A DNA stretch of 64,000 nucleotides from Histomonas meleagridis 2922-C6/04-290x. Its lineage: Eukaryota; Protista; Parabasalia. The position numbers and the translations under genes were made by a program. The notes under the pieces are model-generated. The model searched no databases and was not told the DNA's origin. It saw nothing but the letters and a program-made list of their open reading frames with translations. How positions within the stretch are numbered: position 1 is the stretch's first letter; the number at the start of each line of letters is the position of its first letter. Positions 34,537 through 64,000 of the stretch are shown piece by piece. The stretch spans positions 124,001 through 188,000 of the forward strand of contig JAANOX010000238.1 in the NCBI GenBank assembly GCA_020184695.1. Direction: 5' to 3'.

Positions 34537-37500
34537 ATGACATATATTAGACTTGTTACGAAAATAAATGATATTGATGTCTATTTAGAATTTCTTAAAG
34601 GAATTGAAACATTTGAAGAAAACAATAAAATCAAATCAAAAATCCTTCAAATGTTCTCATGTTTTCTTGATAAAAAGCACCCCTACGAATCATTTTATAT
34701 TATGAATAAGATGAATGAACAAAATATTCTTGATTCAAAATATATTAAAAATTTGAGCAAACCTAATTCGGTATATTATTCTGATACTCAAAGTAATTAT
34801 TATTATGTAAAAATTTTAAAGAATGATTTCGAACTTCATAAAAAATATGTTAAAGAAGGAAATAATCCGAATGAAATTGCACAAATAATTCGAAATGATG
34901 AAATCGAAAAACTTCAAGAAATATCATCACATACAAATTTCGATTTTAATCAATATGTTATACCATCACTTTATGAAAAATATTCATTTATTAATAAAGA
35001 TAATGTTTCACTCATTGATTATGCAGCATTTTTTGGATCTGTTAAATGTTTTAAATATTTACTTATGAATGGTGCTAAAGTAGAAAATACAGGTAAATAT
35101 GCAATTTCAGGTGGAAATGAAGAAATTATTCATTTATGTGAACAAAATCATTCTTCATTTAAAGATGCATATGAAACAGCAATTCAATACCATAAAAATG
35201 ATATATTTAAATATCTTTATGAGAATAAAATCGATCAATTTAATGATTTGGAATTTTTAGGAGAAAAATGTATTTTATATTATAATTTTGAAATTTTATC
35301 ATATTTAATTGAAGAAGGAATGAAAATTAATGATAAAATTATTAATACATCAGCAAAAATTGGAAATCTATATCTTACAAAACATTTCCTTCAAAATAAA
35401 CAAATTCCAAAAGATATATTAAATTATTCATTTGATTCTAAAAATATTGAACATTTTAAATATATTTTAGAACAAGAAGGAATTGATATTAATGCTAAAG
35501 ATATCTATTTGTTTTATTTAATATTTATTTTAATAATTTTGGATTTCAAAATAATATTTGGAAATGATTTAATTTATTTAGAACAGCGCTTATTTGTGCA
35601 TCTTTATATAGTTATACAGAAATAGTCAAATTACTTCTTGAACAAAAAGGAATTGATATAAATGCAAAAGATATTAATTTGTTTTATTTAAGATATATTT
35701 CAATAATTTGATATTTCAAAATAATATTTGGAAATTATTTAAATTATTTCAAACAGCACTTATATTAGCATCTTTTTTTGGTCATGTAGAAATCGTTCAA
35801 TTCCTTCTAAAACATAAAGAAATTGATATAAATGCAAAAGATATTAATTTGTTTTATTTAAGATATATTTCAATAATTTGATATTTCAAAATAATATTTG
35901 GAAATTATTTAAATTATTTCGAACAGCACTTATGGAAGCATCTAATAAAGGTTATAAAGGTTATATAGATATTGTTAAATTACTTCTTGAACATAAAGAA
36001 ATTTATATAAATGCAAAAGATATTAATTTGTTTTAATAATTTAATATTTCAAAATAATATTTGGAAATTATTTAAATTATTTCAAACAGCACTTTTGTTT
36101 GCGTCTTATTGTGGGTATGAAAAAATAATTAAATTACTTCTCAAAAAAAATGAGATTGATCTTATAAAATGTACTTATTTATTTTATTTAATATATGTTT
36201 TAATAATATATTGTTTCAAATTAATATTTGGAAATTATTTCAATCGTTTTGCAAAGTTCTTATTTTAGCATCTAAAGAAGGTTTCATTGAAATTGTTAAA
36301 TTTATTCATGAACAAAAAGGAATTAATGTCAATACTAAATATATTTTTTTGTTTTAGTTAGTGTTTATTTGATTGGTTTGATGTCTGTTTTAATGATTTT
36401 TATATTTTATTATATTTGGAAATTATTTAAATTATTTCAAACAGCACTTATTAAAGCATCTTTTTTTGGTCACGTAGAAATCGTTCAATTACTTCTAAAA
36501 CATAAAGAAATTGATATCAATGCAGAAGATATTCATTTGTTTTATATAATCTTCGTTGTAATAATTTGATATTATAAAATAATATTTGGAAATTATATAA
36601 ATTATATTATACATCTCTTATGTGTGCAACTCACTTTGGATTTATAGAAATCGTTAAATTACTTCTTGAACAAGAAGGAATTGATATTAATACTAAAGAT
36701 ATTTATTTGTCATATTTAGAATTTATTTTAATAATTTTTTATTTCAAAATAATATTTGAAAATTATTTAAATTATTTAGAACAGCACTTATGTTAGCATC
36801 TTTAAATGGTCATACAGAAATAGTTAAATTACTTCTTGAACAAGAAGGAATTGATATTAATGCTAAAGATATTTGTTTATTTAATTTGAAATTTATATTA
36901 ATAATTTGACATTTCAAAATAATATTTGAAAATTATTTAAATTATTTAGAACAGCACTTATGTTAGCATCTTTAAATGGTCATACAGAAATCGTTAAATT
37001 ACTTCTTGAACAAGAAGGAATTGATATTAATACTAAAGATATTTATTTGTCATATTTAGAATTTATTTTAATAATTTTTTATTTCAAAATAATATTTGGA
37101 AATGATTTAAATTATTTCAAACAGCACTTATTTTGGCATCTTTATATGGTCGTACAGAAATAGTTAAATTACTTCTTGAACAAGAAGTAATTGACATTAA
37201 TGCTGAAAATATTTATTTGTTTTATTTGATATTTATTTTAATAATTTAAATTTTCAAAATAATATTTGGGAATTATTTAAATTATTTGAAACATCACTTA
37301 TGTTAGCATCTTTAAATGGTCATACAGAAATAGTTAAATTACTTCTTGAACAAGAAGGAATTGAAATAAATGCTAAAAATATTTATTTATTTTGTTTAAT
37401 CTTTTTTTGAAATATTTAATATTTGAAGATTTGATTTGAAATTTTTTCATGATATTTAGAACAGCACTACAATGTGCATCAAAATTTGGATACATAAATA

Positions 37501-37738
37501 TAATTAAATTACTTCTTGAACAAGAAGGAATTGATATTAATGCTAAAGATATATATTTGTTTTGTTTAAAATTTATTATAATAATTTAAGATATCAAAAC
37601 AATATTTGGAAATGATTTAATTTATTTAAAACAGCGCTTTTTATAGTATCACAAAAAGGTTATACAGAAATAAAAAAATTATTTCTTGAAAGATTGGGAA
37701 TTGACATTTATTATAAAGACAAGAATTATCAAGGTTAA
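34537..37738 (+). CDS. DUF3447-type ankyrin protein whose 13 C-terminal ankyrin repeats are each interrupted by a frame-breaking insert
   Basis: N-terminal ORF has SLIDYAAFFGSVKCFKYL and AISGGNEEIIHLCEQ; 13 stop-free segments TALxxASxxGxxEIVKLLLEQEGIDINAKD follow; the last runs to TAA at 37736-37738. Confidence 0.75.
35503..37630 (+). repeat. ~170-bp tandem unit (90-nt ankyrin-coding segment + 80-nt AT-rich insert) x13
   Basis: Inserts at 35503-35582, 35673-35752, 35843-35922, 36022-36085, 36173-36252, 36343-36440, 36531-36610, 36701-36780, 36871-36950, 37041-37120, 37211-37290, 37381-37460, 37551-37630. Confidence 0.92.
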
Positions 37739-48154: not shown

Positions 48155-50734
48155 ATGTCTTTTTCTTCAATCCTTACTGAAAGACTTAAAAATAGAAATT
48201 TTATTTCTGTCAGTTTGGACTATGAAGTCCTGCAATTATTTTGCGAAGACATATGTTCTAAGCTTGATGAACTTGATGAAAAAATATTAATTCTTGAAAA
48301 AGCACAAACAAGCAAAGAAAACTTTGAAGAAACACAGCACATTACAGCTGAAAAGCAAAGCAACGAATATGAAAGTCGAATATCATCACTTGAAAATAAT
48401 AACAAAGAACTTACTGAACAACTAAATTCACTCAAACAAGAAATACAAAATATGCTCAAAGATAATAATGAAAAAATAGATGCATCAATTGGGAAATGTA
48501 TCATTGATACCGGCAATATCACACGAAACCTTATTCAAGAAAGTGCTCCTGAAGTTGCAAACAATGCAATGAAATTGATTCCCAACCTTGATTCTTTAAT
48601 ACGTGATAACATTGAAAAGCAAAAACAGATCGACTCATTGAATTCAACACTCAATGAAATGAAAAATGAAATAAACCAATTAAAACAGCACAAGCAATCA
48701 AATGTCTCTTCTTTTTCAACACCACGACAACATTCAAATGAATCATCAATAATTCTTCAACAACCACAACAACCCGAAACCGATGAAATCCCTTCCCAAA
48801 ACAACGTATCTTTAGAGACAAATCAAGAGACCGAACAAAATAATATTGATTACCCGTCAAATGATTCATCAATAAATATCAACAAATTTAAAGAAGAACT
48901 TTCATATATGCAAAGCAACATGGAGCAAGACATTGAGCCCATTCGTGGTGATATTGAATGCCTTCAATCCTTAATACGTGATGTCGAAGATAATCACATT
49001 GAAGATATTGCACAACTTAAAGCACGAATTGAAGGACTTGAAAGCGCAGTTCAAAAGCCACTTGACATATCTGCGATTACAAAGAGTAATGGCGATATTG
49101 ATATTGCACCAATTCTCCAACAACTTCAACATCAGAAGTCACTTATTCAGTCAAACTCAGAACGAATATCGACAATTGAAGAGAAACTCAAGACGAAAAT
49201 TTCTGAAATACAGCAACAAAACTCGAATATAAACGACAACATATTTGATATACCAAACAAAGAAATGATTCCGGAAAAAAGTCAAACATTTAACACACAG
49301 CAAAATTCAAATATAAATTCATTTGACCATAATAAACCAAAACCAAACATACCACCGCATAATAAGCTAAAGATAACGCATATGAATGACCAACGATTCG
49401 ATTCCCTTAATCAATCTGTGCGTGTGCTCGAGAAAGAGATGAAAGAAGTAAAGAATGCACTGCACTCACTGAATTATGAAATGCCAACGCCACAAGAAAC
49501 AAATACTAATGACAACAACACAAAAATACAAAATATCGAAACACCAAAAATTCGTTCATTAAATTCTGGTGAAGATGACAATAGTAATAACAATGAATTT
49601 ACAATTAAAACGCGTTCAGAACCAAACAAAATTGCTAAAGCTAACAACGAAACTATAATAAGCGAACGCCGAAATAATGAAAATTCAACAAATACAAATA
49701 ACGAAGAAAATCCAAATCAAAATCCAAATGAAATATATTCGCTAACAACTTCAAATAACACTAACGAAGAAATTCATTCCAACGCGCGAAGTAATTCCAA
49801 ATCCAATCGAACATATTCGCCGAACATCAACACTGAAGAAGTTACGTACAAAGTTTCGCGCAAAGAATTCCACGAAGTTCCGCAGCTCCATAACTACTCC
49901 GAGATACGCTCCGAGCTCAATCAGATCTGGTCCAAACTCAAAGAGCTCACCGAACTCGAAAACGAAGACATTAATAATAATAATAATTCATTTAAAGATA
50001 CAAATGATTTCATACCGAAAACAACAGATTTAACTTCGCACGCAAACACAACAACGCCGAAAGTCATTCACACGATATTCGAGAAGACGATTTTACCAAA
50101 AATATCAGCGAAACAACAAACGCAAACACAAAAAAATAATGCAAATTCACAAATCGAAGACATAAAACTGAGTAATACATTCGATAAAGTGGATAAACAA
50201 GAAAACCTTTTGTACCAACTAAAAAGAGCTGTCGAGATTCAACAAAGAAACATTTTGCAACTCGATGAAGCAAAAGTCGATAAAAATTCGGCGCAAGCGT
50301 TGTTCGAACAATTTAGAATCGCATTGAGTGAGCTAAACTCGAGATTAAACACAATAAAAAAGGCATTGATCGGAAAGGTAAATGCTGCAGATTTGAATAC
50401 TTACTTCGGTAATTTGATGGGCGAGTTTAACAATGACGAAACTTCGACAGGTACTGAAAATATTCGGTGTTTATGTTGTGGAAGGCCAAGGAGAAATATT
50501 AAAGGCGCAATCGATGACCCTTCGATGGTGAATAAAATAGCCGGGCCTGTCTCTACAAGAGTATTAGGTGATGGAGAAGGTCAGGTTTGCTTCGTTTATG
50601 GAGAAAGAGGTGATATGTATATTGGTCGATCTGGAAATGGAAAATCGATCTTTAGTAAGGCTCCAAGCGTAAATAGCTCGCCGAAAAGGAAGTCAAGGGA
50701 AACGCCAAAAAGTTTGGAGCCTCTTTCGAAATGA
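48155..50734 (+). CDS. Coiled-coil protein with C-terminal CxxC (RCLCCGRP) motif
   Basis: 859-aa ORF with Asn/Thr-rich middle. Confidence 0.8.
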   Translation: MSFSSILTERLKNRNFISVSLDYEVLQLFCEDICSKLDELDEKILILEKAQTSKENFEETQHITAEKQSNEYESRISSLENNNKELTEQLNSLKQEIQNMLKDNNEKIDASIGKCIIDTGNITRNLIQESAPEVANNAMKLIPNLDSLIRDNIEKQKQIDSLNSTLNEMKNEINQLKQHKQSNVSSFSTPRQHSNESSIILQQPQQPETDEIPSQNNVSLETNQETEQNNIDYPSNDSSININKFKEELSYMQSNMEQDIEPIRGDIECLQSLIRDVEDNHIEDIAQLKARIEGLESAVQKPLDISAITKSNGDIDIAPILQQLQHQKSLIQSNSERISTIEEKLKTKISEIQQQNSNINDNIFDIPNKEMIPEKSQTFNTQQNSNINSFDHNKPKPNIPPHNKLKITHMNDQRFDSLNQSVRVLEKEMKEVKNALHSLNYEMPTPQETNTNDNNTKIQNIETPKIRSLNSGEDDNSNNNEFTIKTRSEPNKIAKANNETIISERRNNENSTNTNNEENPNQNPNEIYSLTTSNNTNEEIHSNARSNSKSNRTYSPNINTEEVTYKVSRKEFHEVPQLHNYSEIRSELNQIWSKLKELTELENEDINNNNNSFKDTNDFIPKTTDLTSHANTTTPKVIHTIFEKTILPKISAKQQTQTQKNNANSQIEDIKLSNTFDKVDKQENLLYQLKRAVEIQQRNILQLDEAKVDKNSAQALFEQFRIALSELNSRLNTIKKALIGKVNAADLNTYFGNLMGEFNNDETSTGTENIRCLCCGRPRRNIKGAIDDPSMVNKIAGPVSTRVLGDGEGQVCFVYGERGDMYIGRSGNGKSIFSKAPSVNSSPKRKSRETPKSLEPLSK

Positions 50735-50823
50735 ATTTGACAGCGGAAAATTTTGTTTAGTAATTTTTAATAAAATATTGAAATTGTTTTGTAAATTTGC
50801 CAATCAAAAAAATCGGTAAAAAA

Positions 50824-51225
50824 ATGAAAGAAAATGAAAAACAAAATGATATCAAATCACAATTATTGGAATTGATGAATGAAATAGATGAAAAAGCTAA
50901 TAAATATTCCGAAGATCAAAAGAAAAAAATACAACAACAATTGATTTTTGAATACAAATTTATTTTGAAAAATAAACTTGAAGATAAAAACACGACTATA
51001 GAGCCTTGTGATGAAAAAGAATTCAACGAAATTTATACTACATTCTCTAAAGACAAAGACATCAAAAAGTCAAAAAAAGTTGAAAATCTTCGGCAAATTG
51101 CAATGAAACTTGCAAATGTCTCTGGAATAAAGCTCCTCAGTGAAACAATGAAGCACAAAAAAACATTGACACAATGGTTTAAGCTGTATATGGATGATCT
51201 AAAAATGTATATTGATTCAATATAA
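50824..51225 (+). CDS. Small hypothetical protein
   Basis: ORF from ATG MKENEKQ; no family recognised. Confidence 0.5.
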   Translation: MKENEKQNDIKSQLLELMNEIDEKANKYSEDQKKKIQQQLIFEYKFILKNKLEDKNTTIEPCDEKEFNEIYTTFSKDKDIKKSKKVENLRQIAMKLANVSGIKLLSETMKHKKTLTQWFKLYMDDLKMYIDSI

Positions 51226-51416
51226 TGATACACAACCAGCAAACATAGTAAACCTCAATTGTATAGAGTACATTTCTATAGTTTTTTTTGTTTTTTATGT
51301 TGCACATTAAATCAGATCACCAAAATCAGTTTAAGAAATTTTAAAAAATTTTACAGATTTAAATCTCATTGAAATTACTAAAAATATGCAAAAATAATAC
51401 GAGATAAATTGATATT

Positions 51417-51671
51417 TTATTGACGATAAACGTTTTCTAAAAGACCTTTCTCTGTTGCAATGCGATTGAGAGCATTGTCAGCTTCTCCAAGGTTACGAAG
51501 ATAGCCTGAGAAAACAACTGTTTCGAATTCACCTGTTGGGAGACCTTCTTCATTTAACTTGGCGATTCTGAATTGAACAGATGCATGGTCATGTGGCGGG
51601 ATAAGGCGGTGTGTGGCATCACACTTGCGAGGAATAAGTCTGTCGACAACTTCACCCTTTTCGTTTTGCAT
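51417..51671 (-). CDS. RPS21: 40S ribosomal protein S21
   Basis: MQNEKGEVVD..IPRKCDAT.RLI...DHASVQ signature. Confidence 0.95.
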   Translation of the reverse strand: MQNEKGEVVDRLIPRKCDATHRLIPPHDHASVQFRIAKLNEEGLPTGEFETVVFSGYLRNLGEADNALNRIATEKGLLENVYRQ

Positions 51672-52244
51672 TTATAAAAGAGAGACCATAACGGTTAATA
51701 ACCGCACATGATTTGGTCGGATAAAAAGTGCTAAAATAAATGCCGAAACGATTAATTTTAATACAAAAAAATTGGAATCTTTCAAAGATAAGAAAATTTG
51801 TTAAAAAATTAATGTGTCGGAATGATATTTAAAAATAGCAGTTAGTTAGATATGAATTAAACAATGAACAAAATTTATTACATCAATTAGCTAGAATAGT
51901 TAATATTTAACACGCTTCACAAGAAAAATAAATCGTGCATAAGATGATATCATCAACCAGAGACCATAATCAACGTAAAATATCGTAAGATTTATTAAGT
52001 TGGTTATTGAGTAAATGCAATTCAAATTGTACTAGTAATCATATTCATGTAGATTGTATAAGGGATAATAAGAAAGTGATACAAACATTATTATCCACAA
52101 CAATTTCTAAAAAAATTGTTCCAATGCATTTATTATTTTTTTTAATAACTTTTTACAATTAACAATTAACAATTCCGATTCAATAAAAAATTATTTTGTT
52201 TCATACCAAATATTTTTATTGAATTTATATAAATTTTTTATTTA

Positions 52245-53336
52245 TTACATTGATTTAATTCCCGCTTTAAGTGCTTCAGATTTTCTCAAAATCACCAAAA
52301 TTACCACGCCAAATGATACATAATACAAAACAAGCATTGCTCCGCTTATCGTAAATTCATTATTTTTCATGTTTGGAAACATCTCTTTCAAAGTTGTTTC
52401 TGTTGCCTTATCATAAAACCCCTTTTTAATATTGTTTATCACTGTTTCAAGTTTTTGTGGCTCTTTTAATTCATCCACCAAATGAAACGAATTTTTGCTT
52501 TTATCGGCAATAAATATCGACGGCAATGTCAAATTCGCGTTTGGATAATATGTCTTAAATTTGTTTATGTGGATTTTGCCAAACAAAATGTATTTAGTGT
52601 TAATTCCAACTAAACTTCGAAAATCAACAAGTTGCGAATAATTGGAATAAACAAAGAAGACAAAGTGTCGTGGAGTGGTAATACCGTCCCTTAGTTTCCA
52701 ATCGCCCATTTGAACTTTGCTTATGTCATTCGTAAATTTTGCCATTGAATCAATGTCAAAATTACCATTGTATTCGACAAAAACTTTTTCAAAAATGTAA
52801 TATCGAAAGGATTTTGTTGACGTTGAGTTATTGCCAATATAAAATGGTACTTTTGTATTGGATTTATCTTTGATTTGATCAACTTGGGAACATCGATATT
52901 CATCAGTGCTTCCACCCTGATAAAGGAAAAATGGATATTCTTTCTTAAAATCGATGGGAAATCGTGAACATTTGACAGCCATATTAATTTTCTTAAGTTT
53001 TTCAGCTTCCTCAATAAAAGATTCTAAATTCCTTTCAGGATCAATTTCTGTTGCTTTTCCTCTAATGACTTTAACAAAAGTTGGGAAGCCAGATAATCTG
53101 AAAATTTCATCGCATGATGACATAAACTGAGCACAGTTAATTTCGCCCACTGTGATGTTTTGGTCTTTTTCATATTTGCTCATAAATTGAATCCATTCAG
53201 GATGAATTTGTTTACAATGACTGCAATAAGGTGAATACATTAATAAAAAAGCTGGCACATCGTAACTACTGTAAATAATATTTTTAAAGGTTTTATCTGT
53301 TAATATTTCTCTTAGAGAAATTAATAAGATAATCAT
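52245..53336 (-). CDS. Thioredoxin/PDI-like membrane protein
   Basis: Signal-like N-terminus; FLLMYSPYCSHCKQ (CxxC), GEINCAQ and GFPTF; C-terminal TM. Confidence 0.85.
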   Translation of the reverse strand: MIILLISLREILTDKTFKNIIYSSYDVPAFLLMYSPYCSHCKQIHPEWIQFMSKYEKDQNITVGEINCAQFMSSCDEIFRLSGFPTFVKVIRGKATEIDPERNLESFIEEAEKLKKINMAVKCSRFPIDFKKEYPFFLYQGGSTDEYRCSQVDQIKDKSNTKVPFYIGNNSTSTKSFRYYIFEKVFVEYNGNFDIDSMAKFTNDISKVQMGDWKLRDGITTPRHFVFFVYSNYSQLVDFRSLVGINTKYILFGKIHINKFKTYYPNANLTLPSIFIADKSKNSFHLVDELKEPQKLETVINNIKKGFYDKATETTLKEMFPNMKNNEFTISGAMLVLYYVSFGVVILVILRKSEALKAGIKSM

Positions 53337-53592
53337 CAAAGAGAGCGACTCTTGTTTGCTCCAGTTGAAGCCGATAAGAAGCGGTTATCAGAACGTTATT
53401 ACTGAATTAACATGGAAGTTTTAATACCGAATAAATAAAAAAAATAAATTAAATAATTATTATATAATATTTATCTAAATATATTTAGATAAAAGCCGAG
53501 AAATAATGTATTACTCACCAAATTCCAAAAATTTTCAAAAAATCGAAATCACTAAAAACATCAAATTTAATCTGTTTTAAATGAGACTGTTG

Positions 53593-54332
53593 TGTACGTG
53601 AATTGTCAAAAATCATTCAATTCATGAGTAAACTATTCAAGCTAAAATTTTCACTATATCGTACTAGCGACCGTTAGAGGCTGAAGGAAGACCATTGTTG
53701 AAGCAGCAAATGCATATTAAATTTAATTTGGCAATTCAGCGCTGAATCTCATAAATTTATGAATTCTTTGAAAAAGTGTAATTCAAAATATTTTAGCATA
53801 CATTAAAAGCATACAGTGATACAAAAAATGTGAAAATTTAGTGAAAAGAACTGAAAATTCTTGTGGACCACCCCAAAACCGTTGACAATCGGAATACACA
53901 TGAAACTTTTATACAAATATGTAAAATAGAATACAACAATATATCACACACAAAAAGTTGAAGGGTTCATTAATCCATTTGTTTACTATGAGACAAAACG
54001 AATATACAACTCTAAAACAAATTTTTACATGCGAGCGCCGAAGTAGCGAGCGGTTGTGATCGTATTTCACTGAAAAAGCCTATATTCTTCAGTGAAATAC
54101 GATCACAACCGCAGAAGTGGGTTGACATGTGATTGAATAGTTTACATCGAAATTTAATGATTTTTGAGAATTTCCGTACAGCTGGTATACAAAAAATCTC
54201 GAAAATGATATGAATGATTATGTATCCAAACAGACTACTCAATTATTTCACAACGTAAATTAAAATCTGTTCAATTTCCACTTTTTGAGTGGTTTACTCG
54301 AAAATTGAATGATTTTTGAGAATTTCCGTACA
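53593..54332. mobile_element. Degenerate non-autonomous inverted-repeat element (~740 bp)
   Basis: About 48-bp imperfect inverted repeats at 53593-53640 and 54285-54332; an extra internal direct copy at ~54150-54182. Confidence 0.55.
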
Positions 54333-54463
54333 GGACACTGTTTAAAGTGAGACATAACGGGTCGTATTCTAATTTTCTTATAGATTTTAAATATTTTAAA
54401 ATATTTAAAAAAAATTTCATATGTTTTAATAAGAAAGAAGACTTTGCTTTAATTTCATCTCAT

Positions 54464-54814
54464 TATCAATAATCAGATCCAACGAAATATGTTACAGGAT
54501 GAAATTTCCATATGGAATCTTGTCAAAATAGATGAAAACAATGTTAAAAAAAATAACATTGTCTCCTCAGATTCTTCAAAATCATGTTTTTGCATTACTG
54601 ATAAATTGAATACCCCTTTATTGGTGAAATTAAGAACGGATCAATAGTAATTCATCCTGCGAATTTCAAATTTATTATTACGTCAAATCACAGTATTGAA
54701 GAAGCTTTCTCTAATAGTTCTGAAGATGACATAATGGCAATATAAAAAAAATACGAAGAAGTGAATATAACAGGGCCGGATGACTTATTCCTAAGTAGAA
54801 ATCCAATGGATTAA
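54464..54814 (+). pseudogene. rep: Degenerate CRESS-type Rep, SF3 helicase C-terminal half
   Basis: Manual translation: LVKIDE (Walker B), TDK/YPFIGEIKNGSIVIHPANFKFIITSNH (motif C), DIMAI*KKY; contains stops and frameshifts. Confidence 0.75.
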
Positions 54815-54889
54815 ATAAACAATTCATTTGAAAATTTTTTCCTTAAATTGTTTTTAATATACCTATAAATTTGTGACTTTTTGAATGGA

Positions 54890-55102
54890 GACCGTTATGT
54901 ACCATTCTCGAAATTACGGTTATCACGATCAAAATGAATTGAATTTAGAAATAAAGTATTCAATTCTGGAGACCGTTATGTACCAAAATAGATATTTTTT
55001 TGCTATAGTAATATAATCTTGACTGGAGGTACCGCTAACGTCCTCCGCAAGATGGTGCCTAGCATAAGAATTTTTATTTTTTAACGTCCTAAAATAACGG
55101 TC
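54890..55102 (+). repeat. 213-bp repeat, copy 1 (9-bp terminal inverted repeats GACCGTTAT/ATAACGGTC)
   Basis: 211/213 identical to 61340-61552. Confidence 0.9.
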
Positions 55103-55209
55103 GGAATTGAAAAATAAAATTACTCAGATTTCCCATAGTTATCCGATTTTGTAAAGTATTTAATTCCACAGAAATGACGACCGTTTGAGGATGACCATTC
55201 AATACATTG

Positions 55210-56466
55210 ATGATTCATCCTAAGTTTGTGTTTACTCAATCTTTTACAACGAAGCGAAAATGGTATCGCTATCATGAAGACAAGGTGCTAGTTGAAGAAA
55301 TATTTAAAGCGTTTGATATTGGAATGAAACTTGTAGATATCCAAAAAGAAACAAATGTACCTGCAAGTCTTTTTGGGAAATGGAGAAAAAAATATAAGGC
55401 AGATCACAACTATAGGCCAGGCCAACAATATGGAATCTGGCGAAGAAAATTTACAAAAGATCAAGAAATTGCCGTAGCTGATTTTTTGAGGATCCAATAT
55501 ATTCTCCCTGGAATTGTGGTCAAAAGAAAACATTTATGTAATTTGTTGTTTGAACTATGGAAATCTTTTGATCTCCAAAACAGATGACATTTTGATGGTT
55601 CTTTTTCCTATCATTTTGTCACTGACTTTTGTGAGAGAAATGACCTTTCTTTCCGTAAAATGCGGAAAAAGAAGAGGTCTGATTTGAACGAAGATGAAGT
55701 TGCTCACTTTGCAAAACAGTACATGAAAGCTCTATTAAACACACCTCCTGAATATATATTGAACATGGATGAAACTCCATGGAATTATGTATTCAGGAGG
55801 GGCTTTGTTCTGGCTGAACGAGGGAAAGAAGAGGTAGATGCCAAGCTACCAGATGATTACAGAAAGACTTTTACTGTTATTGCAACTATTTCAAGATCAG
55901 GAAATAAATATCCACCATTATTTCTCGCCAAAGGCACAACAAATCAATGCCACAAACAATTTTCACAAATGGTGTCAAGCGCCTCAAAGTATGAGCTATG
56001 GCATGCAAAGGCGGGTTACACTGATGAGCAGTGCATGCTTCACTATTTGGACTTGGTTCAAAAATGGGTTGAATGTCAAAGATGCGTTTTACTTTTGGAT
56101 CGCTACAAAACCCATCGAACACATAATGTAAAAGAATATGCCAAAAGCAAAAATATCAAATTGATCTTTGTCCCCACCTCAGGAACAGAAAAATATCAAC
56201 CATTAGACAAGAAAGTAAATGGAATTCTCAAATCAATAGGACAATCATTATTTGATGATTTTTTATGGGACAGAGGCTACACGAAATCATAGGCAGCTGA
56301 TTTGTTTCTTACTTGTTGGAAAAAGCTGACCAATAAAGCAGTAATTCAATCATGGAACTTTGCCGATATCATATCTGATGATGATGACGATATTGAAAAT
56401 GAAATCGAAAGTTCTGATGAAGACCAATTATATGAAGTATCTGATGAACAGGGATCAAGCAATTAG
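55210..56466 (+). pseudogene. pogo-type DDE_1 transposase with two premature stops
   Basis: Single frame: HTH-like N-terminus, LNMDET, LLLD, YQPLD (35 residues between D2 and D3); in-frame TGA at 55585 and TAG at 56290. Confidence 0.88.
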
Positions 56467-56850
56467 GTTATCCGTGTTTTTATTGAAAAAATTAATGGAT
56501 TGAAAAGCCAAAATTTCATCATTTGCCATGTTAACGTGCTCTATAACGATCAAAATTAACGCAAAATCAAATGAAGAACATCCAGGTGCACCGAAGAATA
56601 ATCTTATTTAAATATAGCAAATTCCAAAAAAATGATGAACATCGGCCCAAAAATATCGGATTTTGTTCTTGAAAAAGCTTCAAAAATTATGAAGTAAAAA
56701 ATACTAATCGAAACTTTTTATAAAAATTCGTAATAACAATATTCGAAATAAATCTAATGATATCCAAAGGGTTGCAATCTTCAAGATGTATTGATGGGAA
56801 CAATTCTAAACCAACTTATGAAGCTATGATTTTCCTAGCAAAAAACGTGT

Positions 56851-58260
56851 TGTTGCAAGAGAAAATCCGTACGACTTCACCTTTCCCCACTTTTTGATAG
56901 ACCACATAGAAATGTTATATGAGTTCATACAAAAAGCTGTATTGAATGGTTTATAATTCCCGCTTTTTCATAATCACAATTAATATATTATATGAGATTT
57001 ATCAATATCACTTTTTCATAAGATATTTATTCAATGTTCAGGAAACTTATTGATCCATGCGATGGAATTGATTTAGATGCATTCCGCAGGTCAATTGAAG
57101 AGAATGGAGTTGAGGCAACCATGAAGATATTCTTTGTTGGGAGAGAGAGACTCAGAGCCATATGCCAACAAGCCAATATCCCAATTCCAGGAAGAGGAAG
57201 ACCTTGCGAACAATGCAAGTCAAGAAACGGTCAGCTACATCCAAGGATACAAGAGCGACTACCATGGTGCCGGATATCAGCGAGTTGCTGGAGTTGCCAA
57301 ACGGAAGGGATTTTCAGCCACTGAATGGAATGTTCGAAAGTTTTTCGGAGAGCAGAACCTATTTAACTACCACAAGCCACCGAAGAAACCTAATGAGCAC
57401 AATAGCCTCTTTGTTGCTCGTTATGCTGGGCAACTATGGCATGCTGATATCCACTATGTTAGAATTGATGATAATCAATTCTATCTCCTTGGCTTCATCG
57501 ATGATCGTACACGCTTTCTACTGCACTATGAAGTTCTCGCAAGCAAGGATTCGAAACTCTGTAGCGAGGCACTCGAGAGAGCTTTGAACAAGGTGCAGTT
57601 TCGACCAAAGATGCTCACCATTGACAATGGTGGAGAGTTTGTTGGAAATCCTTTCCAAATTGTTCTAAGTGCAAATGGGATAGAAGAATTCCGTACTCAC
57701 CCTTATACTCCCCAGCAGAATGGGAAGATAGAAAGATTTTGGTCTACGATCGAGAGAGCTAGAGGTCCATTATTTAAGTGGAGTCTCGAGAAGATCCAAG
57801 AAACGATCAATGAGTACAATACCTATTGGAATCATCGAAGCCTGAAGAAGCTAACTGGTCAAAACATGACTCCCCTTGAAGCATGGAACACCATGGTGAA
57901 GTACACAGGTCAAGATGATGCCATAATTGAGTCGGTTTAATAAATCGCATCTCAATCCACCCTATTTTTTATGAGAACGTTTATTTTGGCCTGGTACTGA
58001 TATGACTTGGAATTGTATAATTTCCAGGTTCCCGATAGGCTGGTCAAATTTGGATTCCGATGTGCATCTATATGTAATAATATTCTCTTGCATATAGACG
58101 ACGGACCGATACAACTTTTTGAGAGTACTCTCAAAAAGTTGTATCGGTGTTTTATTATAAACCATTCAATACAGCTTTTTGTATGAACTCATATAACATT
58201 TCTATGTGGTCTATCAAAAAGTGGGGAAAGGTGAAGTCGTACGGATTTTCTCTTACCACA
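56851..58260 (+). mobile_element. IS481EU-type DNA transposon (1410 bp)
   Basis: TGT...ACA ends; 107-bp TIRs (56851-56957 / 58154-58260, 2 mismatches); 16-bp TSD CTAGCAAAAAACGTGT at 56835-56850 and 58261-58276. Confidence 0.9.
57034..57940 (+). CDS. rve/integrase-like DDE transposase, split by a +1 frameshift near 57200
   Basis: LWHADIHYV, IDDRTRF, LTIDNGGEF and PYTPQQNGKIERFWSTIE; the N-terminal ORF 57034-57324 overlaps the +1 frame. Confidence 0.88.
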
Positions 58261-58430
58261 CTAGCAAAAAACGTGTTAGCATTTAAAAAGTCATAACCGC
58301 CACAAAAAAAGGAAAACTATGGGAAATCTGGGTAAACCTGACCCCCATTTCTAGTACACTTTATACTGATCACCTGTCTACGCCCTTTTATAAAAAAGTG
58401 CTCCGCGGAGTCGGGCTTCGGCAGGTTTGT

Positions 58431-58620
58431 GATAAATGCACTCATTCGCCATTAGGGCTCTCTTTGGGGGAGGGGGTACCTTGGTTTAAAGAAAAAGAAA
58501 AAAGTTCTCAATTGCCCGTAGAGTGAACAAACTTTGTTATTATCACTTATGTGCTGAGTCGAAAAGAGAAAAAAATTAACCAGAAAAACCGATAGAAAAA
58601 AGAAAATATCTTAAAATCAA
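58431..58620 (+). repeat. Direct repeat A, copy 1 (46 bp identical, then ~140 bp diverged)
   Basis: GATAAATGCACTCATTCGCCATTAGGGCTCTCTTTGGGGGAGGGGG also at 60056-60101; GAACAAACTTTGTTATTATCACT shared downstream. Confidence 0.85.
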
Positions 58621-58642
58621 TTGAATGGTTTAATTTTTACAA

Positions 58643-59113
58643 TTAAAAATTAAATAAATAATTAGAATTAGGAACAATTAAAACACTTGGGGCAGCTACT
58701 TCAAAATTAGTTTCACGAATATAAAATACAAGAGAATTATTAAATGTATAAAAACCAACTATACGATCATTAACTGATGGAAAAGTAGTACCAAAATCAT
58801 ATAAATAATAATAAAAAGTACCTACACTAGATAATAGAGATTTACAAATAAAGAATTTATGGATTTGATAATTAACAGTTATCTCTGTAAAATCAGAATT
58901 GGGTTGATTGCGTTCAATAACAATAAAAACATAATAATGAGTACCATCTATTGATGGTAATGGATGACTTGCATCACGTAATGAAAATTGTTTCAAAGAA
59001 AATAAACCAGAAACATCTGAAATAGAAATATAAGATATTGGTATATTAACGCTAATAGTAGAACCTACATCTAATGCTCCCTTCTTATTTATTAAAAACT
59101 TTGATATATACAA
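58643..59113 (-). CDS. Beta-rich hypothetical protein divergent from Rep (possible viral structural protein)
   Basis: 156-aa ORF rich in aromatic and beta-branched residues; ambisense to Rep. Confidence 0.5.
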   Translation of the reverse strand: MYISKFLINKKGALDVGSTISVNIPISYISISDVSGLFSLKQFSLRDASHPLPSIDGTHYYVFIVIERNQPNSDFTEITVNYQIHKFFICKSLLSSVGTFYYYLYDFGTTFPSVNDRIVGFYTFNNSLVFYIRETNFEVAAPSVLIVPNSNYLFNF

Positions 59114-59243
59114 ATATCAATTGAATACTTTATTTAGAAAAGTGGTGGCATAAATAAAATCTATAAAGAATGCCAAAATTAATCGAAAAAATGCCAAATA
59201 GTATGAAATAAATGCCGCAATTTGTTGATTTCATTTGTTCAAA

Positions 59244-60080
59244 ATGGGAGCTAAACGCGGTATCAAGAGGAACAATGTAAGGAATAATGTAGATGGTGAA
59301 AGAGATATTCAACAATTAAATCCCAGAGGTTGTCGATGGGTCGGCACACTCAATAACCCTCTCAACAATTGGCAAGACTTATTCCAAAGTATTGCAAAAG
59401 ACTTAAATATTAAGTATTTAGTGGCGGAGAAGGAGTTCGCCCCAACAACGGGCACTCCACACATTCAGTTTTATTTCAGATTATCCAATAGATTATACAA
59501 AAATACAATCACTAGTAAGTTTACCGGATGTTTTATAGACATCGCAAATGGTTCTGAAGTTGCAAATTATAAGTATTGTACGAAAACCAAAGTTGAATTA
59601 TTAGAAATTGGTAATCCTATTGCTGCTATTGAAGCTGAGAGAAACAAATTGGAGAAAACTAAAGAGATGCTTTCAGATGTTTTGGAATTATCCTGGAATG
59701 AGTTTGAGGCAAAGTGGCCTTACCAGGCATTCCACCATTATAACAAACTAATGGAGTATAAGTTGCGTCATGATAAAACAATTAAGATTTGGGACGGAAA
59801 TTTGAAATCGAAGAATAAGTGGGTCTATGGTCCGCCAGGAACCGGTAAGAGCCGGTGGGCGAGACAACAGGCGACGAACATTAGTAAAGTATATAAAAAG
59901 AACCTCAACAAATGGTGGGATGGGTTCCACCATGAAGAGGCTGAAGTGGTCGTATTAGATGAGATGAACCTGTCGAAGAGTGTACTGGTGGATCAACTCA
60001 AAAATTGGGGAGACCGTTATCCTCTCGAAGGAGAGGTTAAGGGGTCTGCGATGACGATAAATGCACTCATTCGCCATTAG
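59244..60080 (+). CDS. rep: CRESS-DNA-virus replication initiator protein (HUH endonuclease + SF3 helicase), 3'-truncated endogenous viral element
   Basis: Motif I WVGTLNN, motif II PHIQ, motif III YCTK, Walker A GPPGTGKS, KWWDG, Walker B VVLDE; motif C and Arg finger missing; TCATTT 13 nt upstream of the ATG. Confidence 0.93.
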   Translation: MGAKRGIKRNNVRNNVDGERDIQQLNPRGCRWVGTLNNPLNNWQDLFQSIAKDLNIKYLVAEKEFAPTTGTPHIQFYFRLSNRLYKNTITSKFTGCFIDIANGSEVANYKYCTKTKVELLEIGNPIAAIEAERNKLEKTKEMLSDVLELSWNEFEAKWPYQAFHHYNKLMEYKLRHDKTIKIWDGNLKSKNKWVYGPPGTGKSRWARQQATNISKVYKKNLNKWWDGFHHEEAEVVVLDEMNLSKSVLVDQLKNWGDRYPLEGEVKGSAMTINALIRH

Positions 60081-60240
60081 GGCTCTCTTTGGGGGAGGGG
60101 GGATTAAATTTTATAAAATAAAGAAAATTAAAAAAAAAAATTTAATAGCCCATTGAACGAACAAACTTTGTTATTATCACTCATGTGCATAGTCAAAAAG
60201 AAAAAAAGTTATATCAAAAAAAACCGATAGAAAAGAAATG
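60056..60240 (+). repeat. Direct repeat A, copy 2 (replaces the Rep 3' end)
   Basis: See 58431; period 1625 bp. Confidence 0.85.
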
Positions 60241-61339
60241 TTTTTACAACTGACTAAACATCAAATTAAAAAAATTAATTGAAAAAATGTCGAAAACACA
60301 TCAAAAAAGCAAATTTAATCACGTACGATAAAAATTGAATAAAATTACAAATGTCACAATAAATTTGAGAATTTTAAATATGTCAGTTATCGTTAAAAAT
60401 AAAAAAGGTATGTCAAATAACTAGGTGGAGGTAACTGTCAAACCATCGATTGTAAGAGCCTAGATTGTTTACTACTGTCATTGAATACTTTACTAAAGAG
60501 ATATAAGTCATATAAAAAATCAAACAGTCTCAGTCAAATTACTATTGTCAATCAAGAGAATGAAAAAGTGACAGAAAGGTCATAACATATGAAAAACATC
60601 ATATTTACTGATATCAATTGAAATGGTGTACAAGAAAAGTGACAATATGATCATCATTGAAAAATGGATAAGATAATATGATGCCAAATGGAGTATAACA
60701 TCGAATGGAACATATCATAACTTTGCCACAAAAGTATAATTATAGAATTTAAATATTTCAAAAATAGTGATAAATAGTAATCATTTATTTAATGCAATAA
60801 CAAGAATAACAAATCATTAGATTAGATACAATAACAAAGAACAAAGGTATGTATTATGGTTCCTTATCCAATGGAAATGTGACAATACCTATCAATGAGT
60901 AAGATTTAATGACTTAAATGCTTTTCACTATCTAGATCAATATATGATGCAATTACCACCTGAAGAAGTACAAAATATAATAAAAATAATTTAGTAAAAA
61001 ACAAATCAAAATATCTTCTTTATAAAACAATTGAGAAAAAATAAAAAATAACTGAGATACAAATAAGAATAAAAACTAAATTGCAATTGCTAAATGTAAA
61101 GTATAGAAAAAAATATATAATGAAAAAATGACAGAAAGGACATGTCATATGAAAAACAGCAGATTAACATAACATTGAGAAAAATAAAGTATAAAATGAC
61201 ACATATAAATACACACAATTACGAAAAAACATAATGTAGTCTACCTAAAAATGAATTTCCAGGTACCTGACTCATATTGATAAAAATAATTGTTAAATTG
61301 CTTTTAAGGTACCCCAAAATAGAAAATTTTTTGAATAAG

Positions 61340-61552
61340 GACCGTTATGTACCATTTTCGAAATTACGGTTATCACGATCAAAATGAATTGAATTTAGAA
61401 ATAAAGTATTCAATTCTGGAGACCGTTATGTACCAAAATAGATATTTTTTTGCTATAGTAATATAATCTTGACTGGAGGTACCGCTAACGTCCTCCGCAA
61501 GATGGTGCCTAGCAAAAGAATTTTTATTTTTTAACGTCCTAAAATAACGGTC
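61340..61552 (+). repeat. 213-bp repeat, copy 2
   Basis: 211/213 identical to 54890-55102. Confidence 0.9.
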
Positions 61553-61601
61553 ATCTGACGGGTAAAATTTAAACCTAGCCCCTACGGTAGGTATATAATG
61601 C

Positions 61602-61678
61602 GGTCGGGACTGATCACGAAGACCCTAGGGGCCCTGCCGGAGGCAAAGCCCCTAGGGTCTTCGTGATCAGTCCCGACC
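61602..61678. other. Perfect 31-bp GC-rich inverted repeat (hairpin/cruciform)
   Basis: GGTCGGGACTGATCACGAAGACCCTAGGGGC / GCCCCTAGGGTCTTCGTGATCAGTCCCGACC; 15-nt loop with a TGCC-GGA-GGCA mini-stem. Confidence 0.95.
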
Positions 61679-61689
61679 TTAAGTTTTCA

Positions 61690-61769
61690 CTGGGGGATTG
61701 GAGGGGTCTTCGGCCTCCGGATATGCCCTTCGGACCCCTCCGGAGGCCTCAGACCCCTCCAATCCCCAG
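61690..61769. other. Second GC-rich nested hairpin
   Basis: Outer arms CTGGGG(G)ATTGGAGGGGTCT / AGACCCCTCCAATCCCCAG; inner arms GGCCTCCGG / CCGGAGGCC. Confidence 0.9.
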
Positions 61770-62105
61770 AGTGTGCTCGCTCCGCTCGCTACAAAAATCA
61801 AAATGATTTATGTGAGCCATACAATTCGTCTGAAAATTTGAATACACATTCAATTTTGATCGAACGCGAAACTTTTTGATAGGAACGATAGCACTTTTAG
61901 CACCACTTTTCGCATAAACCTATCAAAAACATCACATTACCAACACGAATTGTCCCCGATTATCTTTGGTCGGACATTTATCCTATTTAATTTATCTTTG
62001 CCAGGAGGTTAATAGACAAAAAACGACGAATATTTGTTGAATGCATGGCAAACTTTATTTTAAATAGTAAATAACTGTTATAAATTATCACTTCATTTTT
62101 TCTTC

Positions 62106-62580
62106 ATGTATGCGAATATTTTTTCCATTGCTCAAATTGCAGACAATATCAAAAATAAGGATCTTGATGCTATTGATGTTGCAATATTCTTTGATCCTAA
62201 ATATAATAAAATGGGAAATTACAACAATTTTATTATCAATCCAATTGGGATGATAATAAAACATAGTAATTCTTCCGATTTTTTTATTTTATTCAAAGAG
62301 AAATAATAGAATTCTTTGACAATCCAATACTAATATCAATTCCAATTACTGAAAATAAGAAACCACCTATAAATCAAAATGTTCATTATTTAGAAATAGA
62401 CTTATTTCCATTGAAATGTAAATTTGGACGATGGTATGCATCATATATCTATGAGTCATATAATGATGAAATTAATCGTACATTATTAGATAATGTAATC
62501 GTTAATAGTCAAAATAAAGACAAAACTCATCAATCTGCTTTTGATTTAAAGCAGGATCATTTTCAAGAGTGTCTAAAATG
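62106..62580 (+). pseudogene. Interrupted hypothetical ORF in the virus-like island
   Basis: Inr-like TCATTTTT before ATG 62106; 66-aa ORF, with coding-like sequence (PITENKKPP...QECLK) continuing in another frame. Confidence 0.35.
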
Positions 62581-62617
62581 AAAATGATTTTAATTTATTT
62601 TATTTATTTTGATTCCA

Positions 62618-62833
62618 TTAAAAACTAGAAGGTGATGTATATATTCTACTATTTTGTCTTTCAATTGGATAATTTGATAATTTTTCAAAATAAATTGAAT
62701 TACTAATAGTTAGTTTTGGTAACTTTATATACTGGATAGATGGATCTATTAACTCAGTTTCTTTATCTATCGTTGATGAATTTGATGTCTCATCGTCATA
62801 ATAAGTCTTGATCACCTTCGTGCTACCAGACAT
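62618..62833 (-). CDS. Small hypothetical protein (MSGSTKVIKTYYDDE...)
   Basis: ATG 62833 preceded by TTTTCATTTTTATTA, identical to the leader of the ORF at 63838. Confidence 0.5.
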   Translation of the reverse strand: MSGSTKVIKTYYDDETSNSSTIDKETELIDPSIQYIKLPKLTISNSIYFEKLSNYPIERQNSRIYTSPSSF

Positions 62834-62967
62834 TAATAAAAATGAAAATTTTATTAAATTATAATGAATTTTTGAAACTGAACTATGACAAATGGGACAC
62901 AGGTGTTCTTTAAGGACGCCTGGGATTTGGAATAGTTTCAAAAACAATATATATAAATAATATTTTA

Positions 62968-63237
62968 TTATTTCTTTTGTCCAACTAGCGCATTTGCTAC
63001 ACCATCTATCACAGGTGAGTATTTATCCGCTATTTTAATTCCTTTTGCAATAGCACCTGCATGACCAGGTAAATCTTCAATTCCAGGTATTTTACCTACT
63101 GTATTTACAACAGGTTTAGCTACTTTATTCCATACATTACCAATCAATCTTCCGACTGGTTTAATAATTTTATTTTTAATCCAAGCACCAGCTTTTTTAA
63201 ATCCGTTTTTAATTTTGTTCCAAAAACCCCAAGCCAT
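62968..63237 (-). CDS. Small basic amphipathic-helix protein (MAWGFWNKIKNGFKK), paralogue 1
   Basis: 89 aa; Trp/Lys amphipathic N-terminus shared with two neighbours. Confidence 0.75.
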   Translation of the reverse strand: MAWGFWNKIKNGFKKAGAWIKNKIIKPVGRLIGNVWNKVAKPVVNTVGKIPGIEDLPGHAGAIAKGIKIADKYSPVIDGVANALVGQKK

Positions 63238-63275
63238 GAATAATAATAAAAATAAAATATTAATTCTTTTTTTTT

Positions 63276-63548
63276 TTATTGATAAAATATAGGATGGATC
63301 TTGTCATTTGCTTCATTTCCTATATTTTTAAATAATGGAATTATTTTATCACCGGTTTCGAATATTTTATCCACAGGTAACTTTTTAAGAGGTTTTATTT
63401 TTTTAATGTCTTCTTTATGTTGTTTAGCAAATTCATAACCTTTCACAATATGTGGACTAATTTTTGCGAACCCTTCTTTCATTTTTTTAAGTAAAGGTCC
63501 TATTTCCTTTATTCCGTTTTTAAATTTGTTCCACAAACCCCACGCCAT
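63276..63548 (-). CDS. Small basic amphipathic-helix protein (MAWGLWNKFKNGIKE), paralogue 2
   Basis: 90 aa from ATG 63548. Confidence 0.75.
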   Translation of the reverse strand: MAWGLWNKFKNGIKEIGPLLKKMKEGFAKISPHIVKGYEFAKQHKEDIKKIKPLKKLPVDKIFETGDKIIPLFKNIGNEANDKIHPIFYQ

Positions 63549-63568
63549 AAATAATAATAAAAATAAAT

Positions 63569-63800
63569 TCATTGTTTTATTAAATCCTGTAATATTAACT
63601 TATTCCTAACTTTTTCTTTTACATCTTTAAATATTATTTTATCATTAGGTTTATATGGTAGAATTCTATTTTTATTACCACCTAAATTCCTTTCATGTTC
63701 TAACCATTTTTTCACATTTTTGTTGAATTTTTCTTGTTGTTCTTTACTTAACTGAAATTTGCTCAAACTTTTTTTAATTTTATTCCAAAAACCCCAACAT
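63569..63800 (-). pseudogene. Paralogue 3 with frameshifted start (ATG-T-TGG GGT TTT TGG AAT AAA = M/WGFWNKIKKSL...)
   Basis: ATG at 63800 is one base out of frame with WGFWNKIK, which then reads open to 63569. Confidence 0.65.
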
Positions 63801-63811
63801 ATTTAAAAATT

Positions 63812-63837
63812 ATGAAAAATATTTTTCATTTTTATTA
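63812..63837. promoter_or_regulatory. Palindromic bidirectional Inr-like promoter
   Basis: ATGAAAAATATTTTTCAT is a perfect 18-bp palindrome giving TCATTTTT or TCATAATT on both strands, between divergent ATGs at 63800 and 63838. Confidence 0.55.
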
Positions 63838-64000
63838 ATGTATTATAATAATACGCAATCTAAAAATGAACAAGATGATCAAGGTAATGTTGGTGCTTAT
63901 TTTGATCGTCTTAAAGATTTAATTGCTAAAAATGATGGTACTCGTTCTTTTATTTTAAGAACTGAAGATTGTCATGATCAAAATGCACCATTTAATCAAT
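63838..64000 (+). CDS. 5' part of a hypothetical, possibly viral structural, protein (runs off the window)
   Basis: Open for 54 codons: MYYNNTQSKNEQDDQGNVGAYFDRLKDLIAKNDGTRSFILRTEDCHDQNAPFNQ. Confidence 0.6.
   Translation, partial: MYYNNTQSKNEQDDQGNVGAYFDRLKDLIAKNDGTRSFILRTEDCHDQNAPFNQ

Follow-up and report, generated by a model that had tools for sequence, protein, structure and literature searches.

Two kinds of viral fossils have already been catalogued in the genome of Histomonas meleagridis, a parabasalid parasite of turkeys. For the CRESS viruses, whose circular genomes of single-stranded DNA encode Rep, Kinsella et al. (2022; PMC9615429) counted 145 endogenous viral elements (EVEs) over two H. 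meleagridis assemblies, 41 of them Cap-like, and assigned 102 of the 104 Rep-like EVEs to Kirkoviridae; this survey gives EVE counts and not the anatomy of loci. Kirkoviruses are described as circles of about 3.9 kb with a Rep gene, a capsid gene and further open reading frames (ORFs; PMC10654594, PMC12892396). For double-stranded DNA elements of the Polinton/Maverick and Polinton-like virus (PLV) type, 72 PLV-type capsid matches in the JAANOX assembly are listed in the supplement of Bellas et al. (2023; PMC10120064). In this paper, we describe a locus of the same genome at which relics of both kinds adjoin. It lies at the right end of the window, by which we mean the whole analysed stretch of 64,000 nucleotides, taken from contig JAANOX010000238.1 of assembly GCA_020184695.1.

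A first-pass annotation had joined the features in the last 10 kb of the window into one virus-like island, namely tandem integrated genomes of a parabasalid single-stranded DNA virus or a Rep-driven element mixing CRESS replication with entry peptides. The features noted there far exceed chance, yet make up no single unit. We consider the region, with a probability of roughly 85%, to be a graveyard of two unrelated EVEs, into which transposons were inserted later. The left element (54608-61600) is a patchwork of fragments of kirkovirus-type CRESS virus, i.e., of a circular single-stranded DNA virus, and the right element (about 61602 to at least window-equivalent position 68168) is a degraded Polinton-like double-stranded DNA element. 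The locus as a whole does nothing, and open frames are still kept only by the four genes called Rep 2, orf156, pepA and pepB.

The gene sets of the two parts are separate, and no contig carries the Rep set and the Polinton-like set together. Relatives of the left part are 3.9-kb circles without the peptide or capsid genes seen on the right, and relatives of the right part are contigs of about 16 kb that lack Rep, encode a protein-primed polymerase and have inverted repeats at their termini. The peptides, the ORF at the window edge and probably the hairpins are parts of a separate Polinton-like element, which is the very outcome that the first-pass annotation had named as fatal to its hybrid proposal. 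The idea of a single-stranded DNA replicon equipped with entry genes of a double-stranded DNA virus does not hold, and it would be a mistake to cite this locus as a virus chimera.

Sequence sources

The window is 100% identical to the contig named above. The locus (L006) was read from window position 49244 to window-equivalent position 70080, i.e., 6 kb beyond the window edge, and positions past 64,000 are given either as window-equivalent positions or in the numbering of L006. Coordinates of the features are collected in Table 1.

Repeats and palindromes are abundant in the region and can mislead assemblers, and an assembly artefact joining repeats of different loci might therefore be suspected. 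The second assembly (GCA_020186115.1, locus L005), however, shows the same arrangement with 99.8-99.9% identity over the 14.8 kb compared (49257-64000), although one parental strain is behind both H. meleagridis assemblies (PMC9615429). We regard an artefact as the least probable of all the explanations considered.

Kirkovirus-type fragments in the left part

Both Rep relics noticed in the first reading of the sequence were borne out. The product of Rep 2 matches the Pfam families Viral_Rep (2.3e-08) and RNA_helicase (4.9e-07), both above cut-off, and corresponds to residues 1-273 of 317; neither a stop nor a frameshift interrupts the gene. Its homology stops near 60055, and about 45 codons are gone, motif C among them. 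Relic A covers residues 256-316 of full-length Reps in one frame with one stop (tblastn). Motifs I-III and Walker A and B of the Cressdnaviricota Rep are readable in Rep 2, and motif C is kept in relic A. The closest protein to Rep 2 is the H. meleagridis 'replicase' P0002 (78% identity), followed by the Reps of 3.9-kb circles (54-56%); the nearest match with a name is the Rep of Human fecal virus Jorvi2 (44% identity for the representative of its cluster), and Reps of named kirkoviruses were absent from the matches. Two NCBI contigs of H. meleagridis contain the Rep protein of the window. In 60130-61300, tblastn detected no further remnants of Rep or of the 221-codon gene described below.

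Free relatives of this part were found among metagenome contigs. Because their ends share an overlap of 141 nucleotides, L007 and L009 are circles, with sizes of 3915 and 3943 nucleotides after its removal. Of the five ORFs of each, Rep and a 116-codon ORF share one strand, and those of 127, 162 and 221 codons share the opposite one; a basic N-terminus is seen in the 162-codon product. Both genomes follow the plan of Kirkoviridae, a circle near 3.9 kb in size on which Rep and a capsid gene are accompanied by three to five more ORFs. All that the window keeps of this plan is Rep, one further gene and the intergenic region.

The further gene is orf156, the ambisense beta-rich ORF of the first reading, which is present as noted there. 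In an exhaustive HMMER search, it matches P0333 (214 amino acids) with E 1.1e-20 over residues 65-213 of the latter. P0333 and the 221-codon product of L007 match each other at their N-termini (6e-08), and P0333 is the third gene in a 126/165/214 row. Since P0333 bridges both by its C-terminal match, its N-terminal match and its gene position, orf156 is a 5'-cut copy of the 221-codon gene. It has no Pfam match, and the structure model of the 221-codon-gene family, built from three sequences, reached a predicted local distance difference test (pLDDT) score of only 32.

The intergenic region that follows Rep is designated D1. It is 74-79% identical to the sequence that directly follows the full-length Rep in L004, another locus of H. 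meleagridis. Its core shows 80-84% identity to circular metagenome genomes of 3.9 kb, in which it lies about 185 nucleotides past the Rep stop. A third intergenic fragment, D1', is 93% identical to 54843-55102 and also matches L004 and the free genomes. The core of D1 folds into a long stem with the conserved loop motif GGTAATAT(A/G)(A/T)TC, and five compensatory pairs (double changes) were found among six sequences. In the free virus L003, the stem-loop has a folding energy of -24.9 kcal/mol (z -10). We regard this stem-loop as a putative replication origin, and the kirkovirus lineage thereby gains a conserved origin-like structure.

In L007, L009 and L003, about 185 nucleotides separate the stem-loop from the Rep stop upstream of it, and convergent genes flank it with their 3' ends. 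A C-rich run and then a G-rich run come after it; both runs are retained in the Histomonas copies. A unit of 17 nucleotides is present twice per D1 in direct copies (54887-54903 and 54968-54984; 61337-61353 and 61418-61434). It is similar to the part of the Rep gene that codes for the WGDRY motif (compare 60003-20), and could represent iterons or decayed Rep fragments.

After the transposons, the intergenic region is resumed and contains a segment called seg. Its positions 58461-58607 are 72-74% identical to L007 175-325, L009 3939-4083 and L010 3124-3275, and in the free circles seg adjoins the stop of the 221-codon gene. The second copy, seg', is 77-83% identical to 58431-58588. Upstream of Rep 2, positions 59084-59216 are 89% identical to L004 706-838.

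The order of fragments is Rep tail, D1, transposons, seg, 221-codon gene (minus strand), Rep upstream region, Rep 2, seg', about 1.1 kb of unexplained sequence and D1'. The first four viral items (Rep tail, D1, seg and 221-codon gene) are collinear with one viral genome from which the middle genes were deleted. Because seg and seg' are about 80% identical whereas D1 and D1' are 93% identical, the later fragments stem from other copies. The left part is made of fragments of more than one copy; of the tandem integrated parabasalid virus proposed at first, the integration of kirkovirus-type CRESS DNA in viral order stands, and the clean tandem genomes do not.

Such a patchwork could have arisen from a living kirkovirus-type genome copied by the rolling-circle mode, in which Rep would nick the loop of the stem-loop downstream of its gene. 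Concatemeric or broken replicative DNA may then have been integrated, with deletions following. The subsequent landing of a pogo-like transposon at an intergenic TA, and of an IS481EU element inside the pogo-like one, can be read directly in the window. In comparison with the Kirkoviridae-type EVEs on record (PMC9615429), the left part is alike in the host genome, in a Rep composed of HUH endonuclease and superfamily 3 helicase and in circular relatives of about 3.9 kb. It differs in being a multi-copy patchwork, in the stem-loop kept in both D1 and D1', and in the nested transposons that split it.

Polinton-like element in the right part

The ORF running off the window edge from 63838 is present as first noted, and beyond 64 kb it continues as a capsid relic. 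By tblastn, proteins of a 541-amino-acid capsid family align with 58-60% identity, and in one frame throughout, to L006 14601-16208, which corresponds to window 63844 to window-equivalent 65451, and the partial capsid protein of metagenome contig L011, the nearest relative, matches the window-edge ORF at 79%. The family has no Pfam match and no PDB sequence match. An AlphaFold model built from 30 members gave a pLDDT of 63 and a predicted template modelling (TM) score of 0.58. When PDB and BFVD were searched with this model by Foldseek, only double-jelly-roll capsid proteins were returned (E 4e-09 to 6e-07, probability 1.0), those of grouper iridovirus, PBCV-1 (Vp54), Sputnik, mavirus and PRD1 (P3) among the matches. 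Judged by the predicted fold, the edge ORF is the relic of a divergent double-jelly-roll major capsid gene. A search for the capsid family found 497 capsid clusters at E <= 0.001.

The relic of a probable packaging ATPase gene follows beyond the window, and Walker A is readable in it; the Pfam match to Pox_A32 (20.6 bits) is below the cut-off of 22.8. The larger contigs of the capsid family are 15.9-18.3 kb long. Two of them from two samples (L018 and L019) are 99.65% identical, have terminal inverted repeats of about 200-300 nucleotides at their ends, and encode a protein-primed polymerase of 928 amino acids (PF03175/DNA_pol_B_2, 2.2e-33), a GDSL lipase and an HNH nuclease, with no Rep. The remaining proteins of L017 and L018 have no Pfam matches. 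These contigs of about 16 kb may be virions or multi-copy integrated elements, between which metagenome assembly cannot distinguish.

A double-jelly-roll capsid gene, a probable packaging ATPase and a parabasalid host are shared with the Polinton/Maverick and PLV relics of parabasalids, i.e., those with 'Metamonada group' capsid genes (PMC10120064) and the Trichomonas vaginalis Mavericks, and the relatives of the window add the protein-primed polymerase and terminal inverted repeats to this likeness. Unlike Polintons/Mavericks, the relatives read here have no established integrase or protease: the integrase signal in L018 is sub-threshold (rve, E 0.0084), and a candidate integrase of 527 amino acids has no PDB sequence match. 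In the 21 kb read at the Histomonas locus, neither a polymerase nor an integrase gene was found. The locus links an anonymous gut-metagenome family of about 16 kb, with protein-primed polymerase and double-jelly-roll capsid, to a parabasalid host, and this parallels the endogenous Reps that tie kirkoviruses to parabasalids.

Small basic proteins and gene starts

The three paralogous peptides of the first reading are present next to the capsid relic and have one N-terminal motif in common. For pepA, 31 homologues were found with E down to 2e-32, all from metagenomes, and they stand head to head with the 541-codon capsid gene in every contig read; pepB matches the 69-codon gene of L011. A 163-amino-acid product of L011 matches window 62097-62500 in two frames (7.6e-18). 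The gene order in L011 is capsid, 69, 101, 90, 92 and 163 codons, and that in the window is capsid, third paralogue, pepB, pepA, orf109 and 163-codon relic. As the two orders agree, the triplication of the peptide gene predates the integration. No sequence similarity of orf109 to the 92-codon gene of L011 was detected, and it has no Pfam match.

The peptide N-terminus MAWG(F/L/I/V)WNKIKNGFKK is nearly invariant among relatives whose capsids are only about 59% identical to the Histomonas copy. The peptides of the relatives are 86-93 residues long. Those measured are lysine-rich, with a net charge of +9 to +13, no long hydrophobic stretch and a moderate hydrophobic moment of the N-terminus (0.43-0.51). 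They are most likely virion-internal proteins of the Polinton-like virus, and may act in membrane penetration or in DNA condensation, with no preference between the two roles.

Adenovirus protein VI and the proposed membrane-active capsid proteins of adintoviruses are small, virion-associated proteins with an amphipathic N-terminus, which are encoded near the double-jelly-roll capsid gene. The peptides resemble these factors in their small size, their amphipathic N-terminus and the position of their genes near the capsid gene, and it is possible that they work like a lytic factor of the protein VI type. They are unlike them in their strong positive charge, which fits a DNA-condensing core protein equally. 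Pfam searches (E 0.1) gave no match for the small ORFs of the window, and likewise for most proteins of the metagenome relatives. As to a protein VI-like factor, no homology was detectable at this threshold, the amphipathicity is moderate, and no protease was identified. The earlier remark that the peptides are reminiscent of adenovirus and Polinton-type viruses was right in the kind of element, and homology to adenovirus protein VI was not detected.

Start patterns were surveyed in 52 genes from the metagenome relatives L011, L012, L015, L017 and L018. TAAATG is found at 20 of the 52 starts against a background of 4.4% (p 2e-14, a value inflated by the fact that the motif was picked after inspection), and a T-rich block lies within 40 nucleotides upstream of 26 starts against a background of 3%. 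Host-type initiator (Inr) leaders, which had been reported for several small ORFs, did not hold up for relatives of the right element, since TCAYW within 30 nucleotides upstream of the start was found in 5 of the 52 genes against a background of 15%, i.e., with no enrichment. Window sites for the start pattern are 63238-63275 and 63549-63572 on the minus strand.

A T-rich block followed by TAAATG is the pattern of poxvirus late promoters. In a preprint, pox-related egoviruses are proposed in Parabasalia, with gene flow to their polintons, and nothing on promoters is given there. It is conceivable, and in our opinion unlikely, that the right relic is the footprint of a large undescribed family of 16-kb viruses of gut parabasalids that is transcribed by an apparatus of the giant-virus type and lives as virophage-like dependants of egoviruses, with the MAWGxWNKIKNGFKK proteins as entry or core factor. 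Small basic proteins with an invariant N-terminus and TAAATG starts were found nowhere in the literature searched; these two features of the Polinton-like family are possibly new, and both the small protein family and the promoter-like pattern merit a survey.

Junction between the two parts

The large GC hairpins of the first reading are present as a pair at the junction of the two virus-derived parts. The hairpin at 61602-61678 has a folding energy of -45.9 kcal/mol (z -14.3), and that at 61693-61767 has -36.2 kcal/mol (z -8.6). In L011, two GC hairpins come after the conserved non-coding stretch, whose end is formed by the short motif also seen there in the window, and in the intergenic regions of the free kirkovirus-type circles there are none. 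On account of this difference, we assign the hairpins to the Polinton-like element, to which they probably belong. The hairpins of L011 sit between two genes of the same orientation, and a transcript end or other structural signal would be their likeliest function; they may also have been a fragile palindrome that turned into a breakpoint. An Rfam scan of 54000-64000 gave no family at threshold and only sub-threshold matches to generic hairpins. Exact-pattern scans with the hairpin-side motif (IMG/VR) and with a hairpin arm (IMG/VR and JGI metagenomes) gave unrelated chance matches only.

A second structure touching both parts is an inverted repeat with one arm in the left part and one between the capsid and ATPase relics. 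The outer 286 nucleotides of its arms (60480-60762 and window-equivalent 66574-66859) are 97% identical, and the similarity becomes weaker inward. A target duplication is absent, and none of the virus contigs fetched contains a match to the repeat. Since arms are present in both parts, the two parts exchanged or shared sequence after arrival. A short motif at the outer ends of the repeat recurs upstream of Rep 2 and, in inverted orientation, in D1.

Several points weigh against the reading of the region as two unrelated elements. D1' adjoins the hairpins directly, and the inverted repeat has an arm in each part, one within the CRESS patchwork and one within the Polinton-like element. The hairpins were assigned by position and by comparison with a single relative (L011), and sequence identity plays no part in this. 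The quality of the capsid model is moderate, with TM scores of 0.3-0.45 in addition to its pLDDT of 63. Finally, the left part is placed in Kirkoviridae provisionally, by the published phylogeny (PMC9615429) and by genome layout.

The first two of these points could be explained by a single chimeric element, in which a CRESS Rep drives a cassette of Polinton-type capsid and entry proteins: the parts are contiguous, the D1' that abuts the hairpins bears the putative origin, and the inverted repeat brackets 60480 to window-equivalent 66859. Many relatives, however, have each gene set without the other, as seen in the five-gene 3.9-kb circles and in the 16-kb polymerase contigs without Rep. Moreover, the bracketing repeat has no target duplication, the ATPase relic is outside the bracket though belonging with the capsid gene, and the degree of decay differs between the parts. 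We therefore consider such a chimera to be very improbable.

Another explanation is that the adjacency of two unrelated elements is non-random, kirkovirus DNA having been captured at or inside Polinton-like copies, for example at breakage-prone palindromic hairpins. It would account for a junction exactly at two very stable palindromes and for a second shared sequence, the inverted-repeat arm, within the Polinton-like relic. On the other hand, this is one locus only, and about 50 Rep-like and 70 capsid-like relics are on record per assembly. The H. meleagridis genome is roughly 45 Mb in size, and with these counts chance alone would place about one Rep relic within 5 kb of a capsid relic. At L004, the other Rep locus looked at, there is no Polinton-like neighbour. 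Capture is thus improbable, though less so than the chimera, and we retain the reading of two unrelated EVEs that came to lie side by side.

Table 1. Coordinates of viral relics, transposons and associated features at the H. meleagridis locus (window positions unless noted)
Feature	Position	Strand	Description
Rep relic A	54608-54796	+	Last ~60 codons of kirkovirus-type Rep including helicase motif C; 5'-truncated, 1 in-frame stop
D1, intergenic region following Rep	54813-55122	+	Origin-like stem-loop inside, core about 54990-55085
pogo/Tc1-like DNA transposon	55123-58332	+	~30-nucleotide terminal inverted repeats; TA duplication 55121-55122/58333-58334
IS481EU-type transposon	56851-58260	+	Nested in pogo-like element; 107-nucleotide inverted repeats, TGT...ACA ends
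Intergenic region resumed after transposon	58335-58607	+	Contains seg (58431-58607)
orf156	58643-59113	-	5'-truncated relic of kirkovirus-type 221-codon gene (third of 127/162/221 module); frame open, no internal break
Rep 2 upstream region	59084-59243	+	Common to L004 locus
Rep 2	59244-60080	+	HUH endonuclease domain, helicase Walker A and B; 3'-truncated
seg' (second seg copy)	60056-60222	+	Fused directly to cut end of Rep 2
Inverted repeat, left arm	60480-61168		Partner L006 16898-17616 (window-equivalent 66141-66859), between capsid and ATPase relics
D1' (third intergenic fragment)	61293-61600	+	Origin-like stem-loop; 5' side cut; abuts GC hairpins
GC hairpin pair	61602-61678 and 61693-61767		Junction of two virus-derived parts
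Conserved non-coding stretch of Polinton-like element	61775-61885	-	76% identical to L011 3047-3161
Relic of ~163-codon gene	62097-62581	+	1 frameshift
orf109	62618-62947	-	Position of 92-codon gene in L011
pepA	62968-63237	-	Intact, 89 codons; basic amphipathic protein, net charge +12
pepB	63276-63548	-	Intact paralogue, 90 codons from conserved start; mechanical ORF extends to 63572
Third paralogue	63569-63802	-	N-terminal motif common to pepA/pepB; not intact, 1 break
Major capsid gene relic (predicted double-jelly-roll)	63838-64000, on to window-equivalent 65463	+	One frame, 542 codons, 4 in-frame stops
Probable packaging ATPase relic	L006 18142-18925, past window edge		Two frames, 1 frameshift; homologue match 5.97e-43

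Nested transposons and other observations

The invasion by transposons seen in the first reading consists of two nested elements with clean target duplications. The pogo-like element has ORFs for a helix-turn-helix (HTH) protein (55207-55587) and a DDE_1 transposase (55660-56292), with Pfam matches to DDE_1 (2.1e-14) and, weakly, to HTH_Tnp_1; TA duplication, terminal inverted repeats, DDE_1 and HTH, by which pogo/Tc1-mariner elements are recognized, are all present. The inner element has a 16-bp target duplication (56835-56850/58261-58276) and an rve transposase ORF at 57134-57940 (Pfam rve, 9.9e-15). IS481EU elements of H. meleagridis are described as having TGT...ACA termini, a 15-16-bp target duplication and an rve-type transposase (PMC10045372), all of which are found here. 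Both elements are ordinary in every feature in comparison with IS481EU (PMC10045372) and pogo/Tc1-mariner; they are later invaders and part of neither virus, and without them the viral intergenic region would be continuous.

In L004 (JAANOX010000080.1), positions 1843-3318 hold another Rep relic, after which a region of D1 type and a pogo-like pair of HTH and DDE follow in turn. The transposases of L004 and the window are 28-31% identical, and their insertion points differ.

Two ORFs between the capsid and ATPase relics were considered as chromodomains, and this was rejected for want of Pfam or PDB support. After the ATPase relic, three open frames of 142, 277 and 173 codons are located at L006 18969-20818 (window-equivalent 68212-70061), with no Pfam match and no match to the metagenome relatives read. 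To the left of the Rep tail, there are a near-perfect hairpin of 28 nucleotides and a direct repeat of 49 nucleotides at 54050-54112 and 54133-54333. Elsewhere in the window, 7013-9036 has strong T- and C-skew and nested repeats of 21/42/84/147/294 nucleotides; the minus strand probably carries repetitive coding sequence there. A satellite of 170 nucleotides is present in 13 copies at 35470-37690, in a stretch of 19-20% GC.

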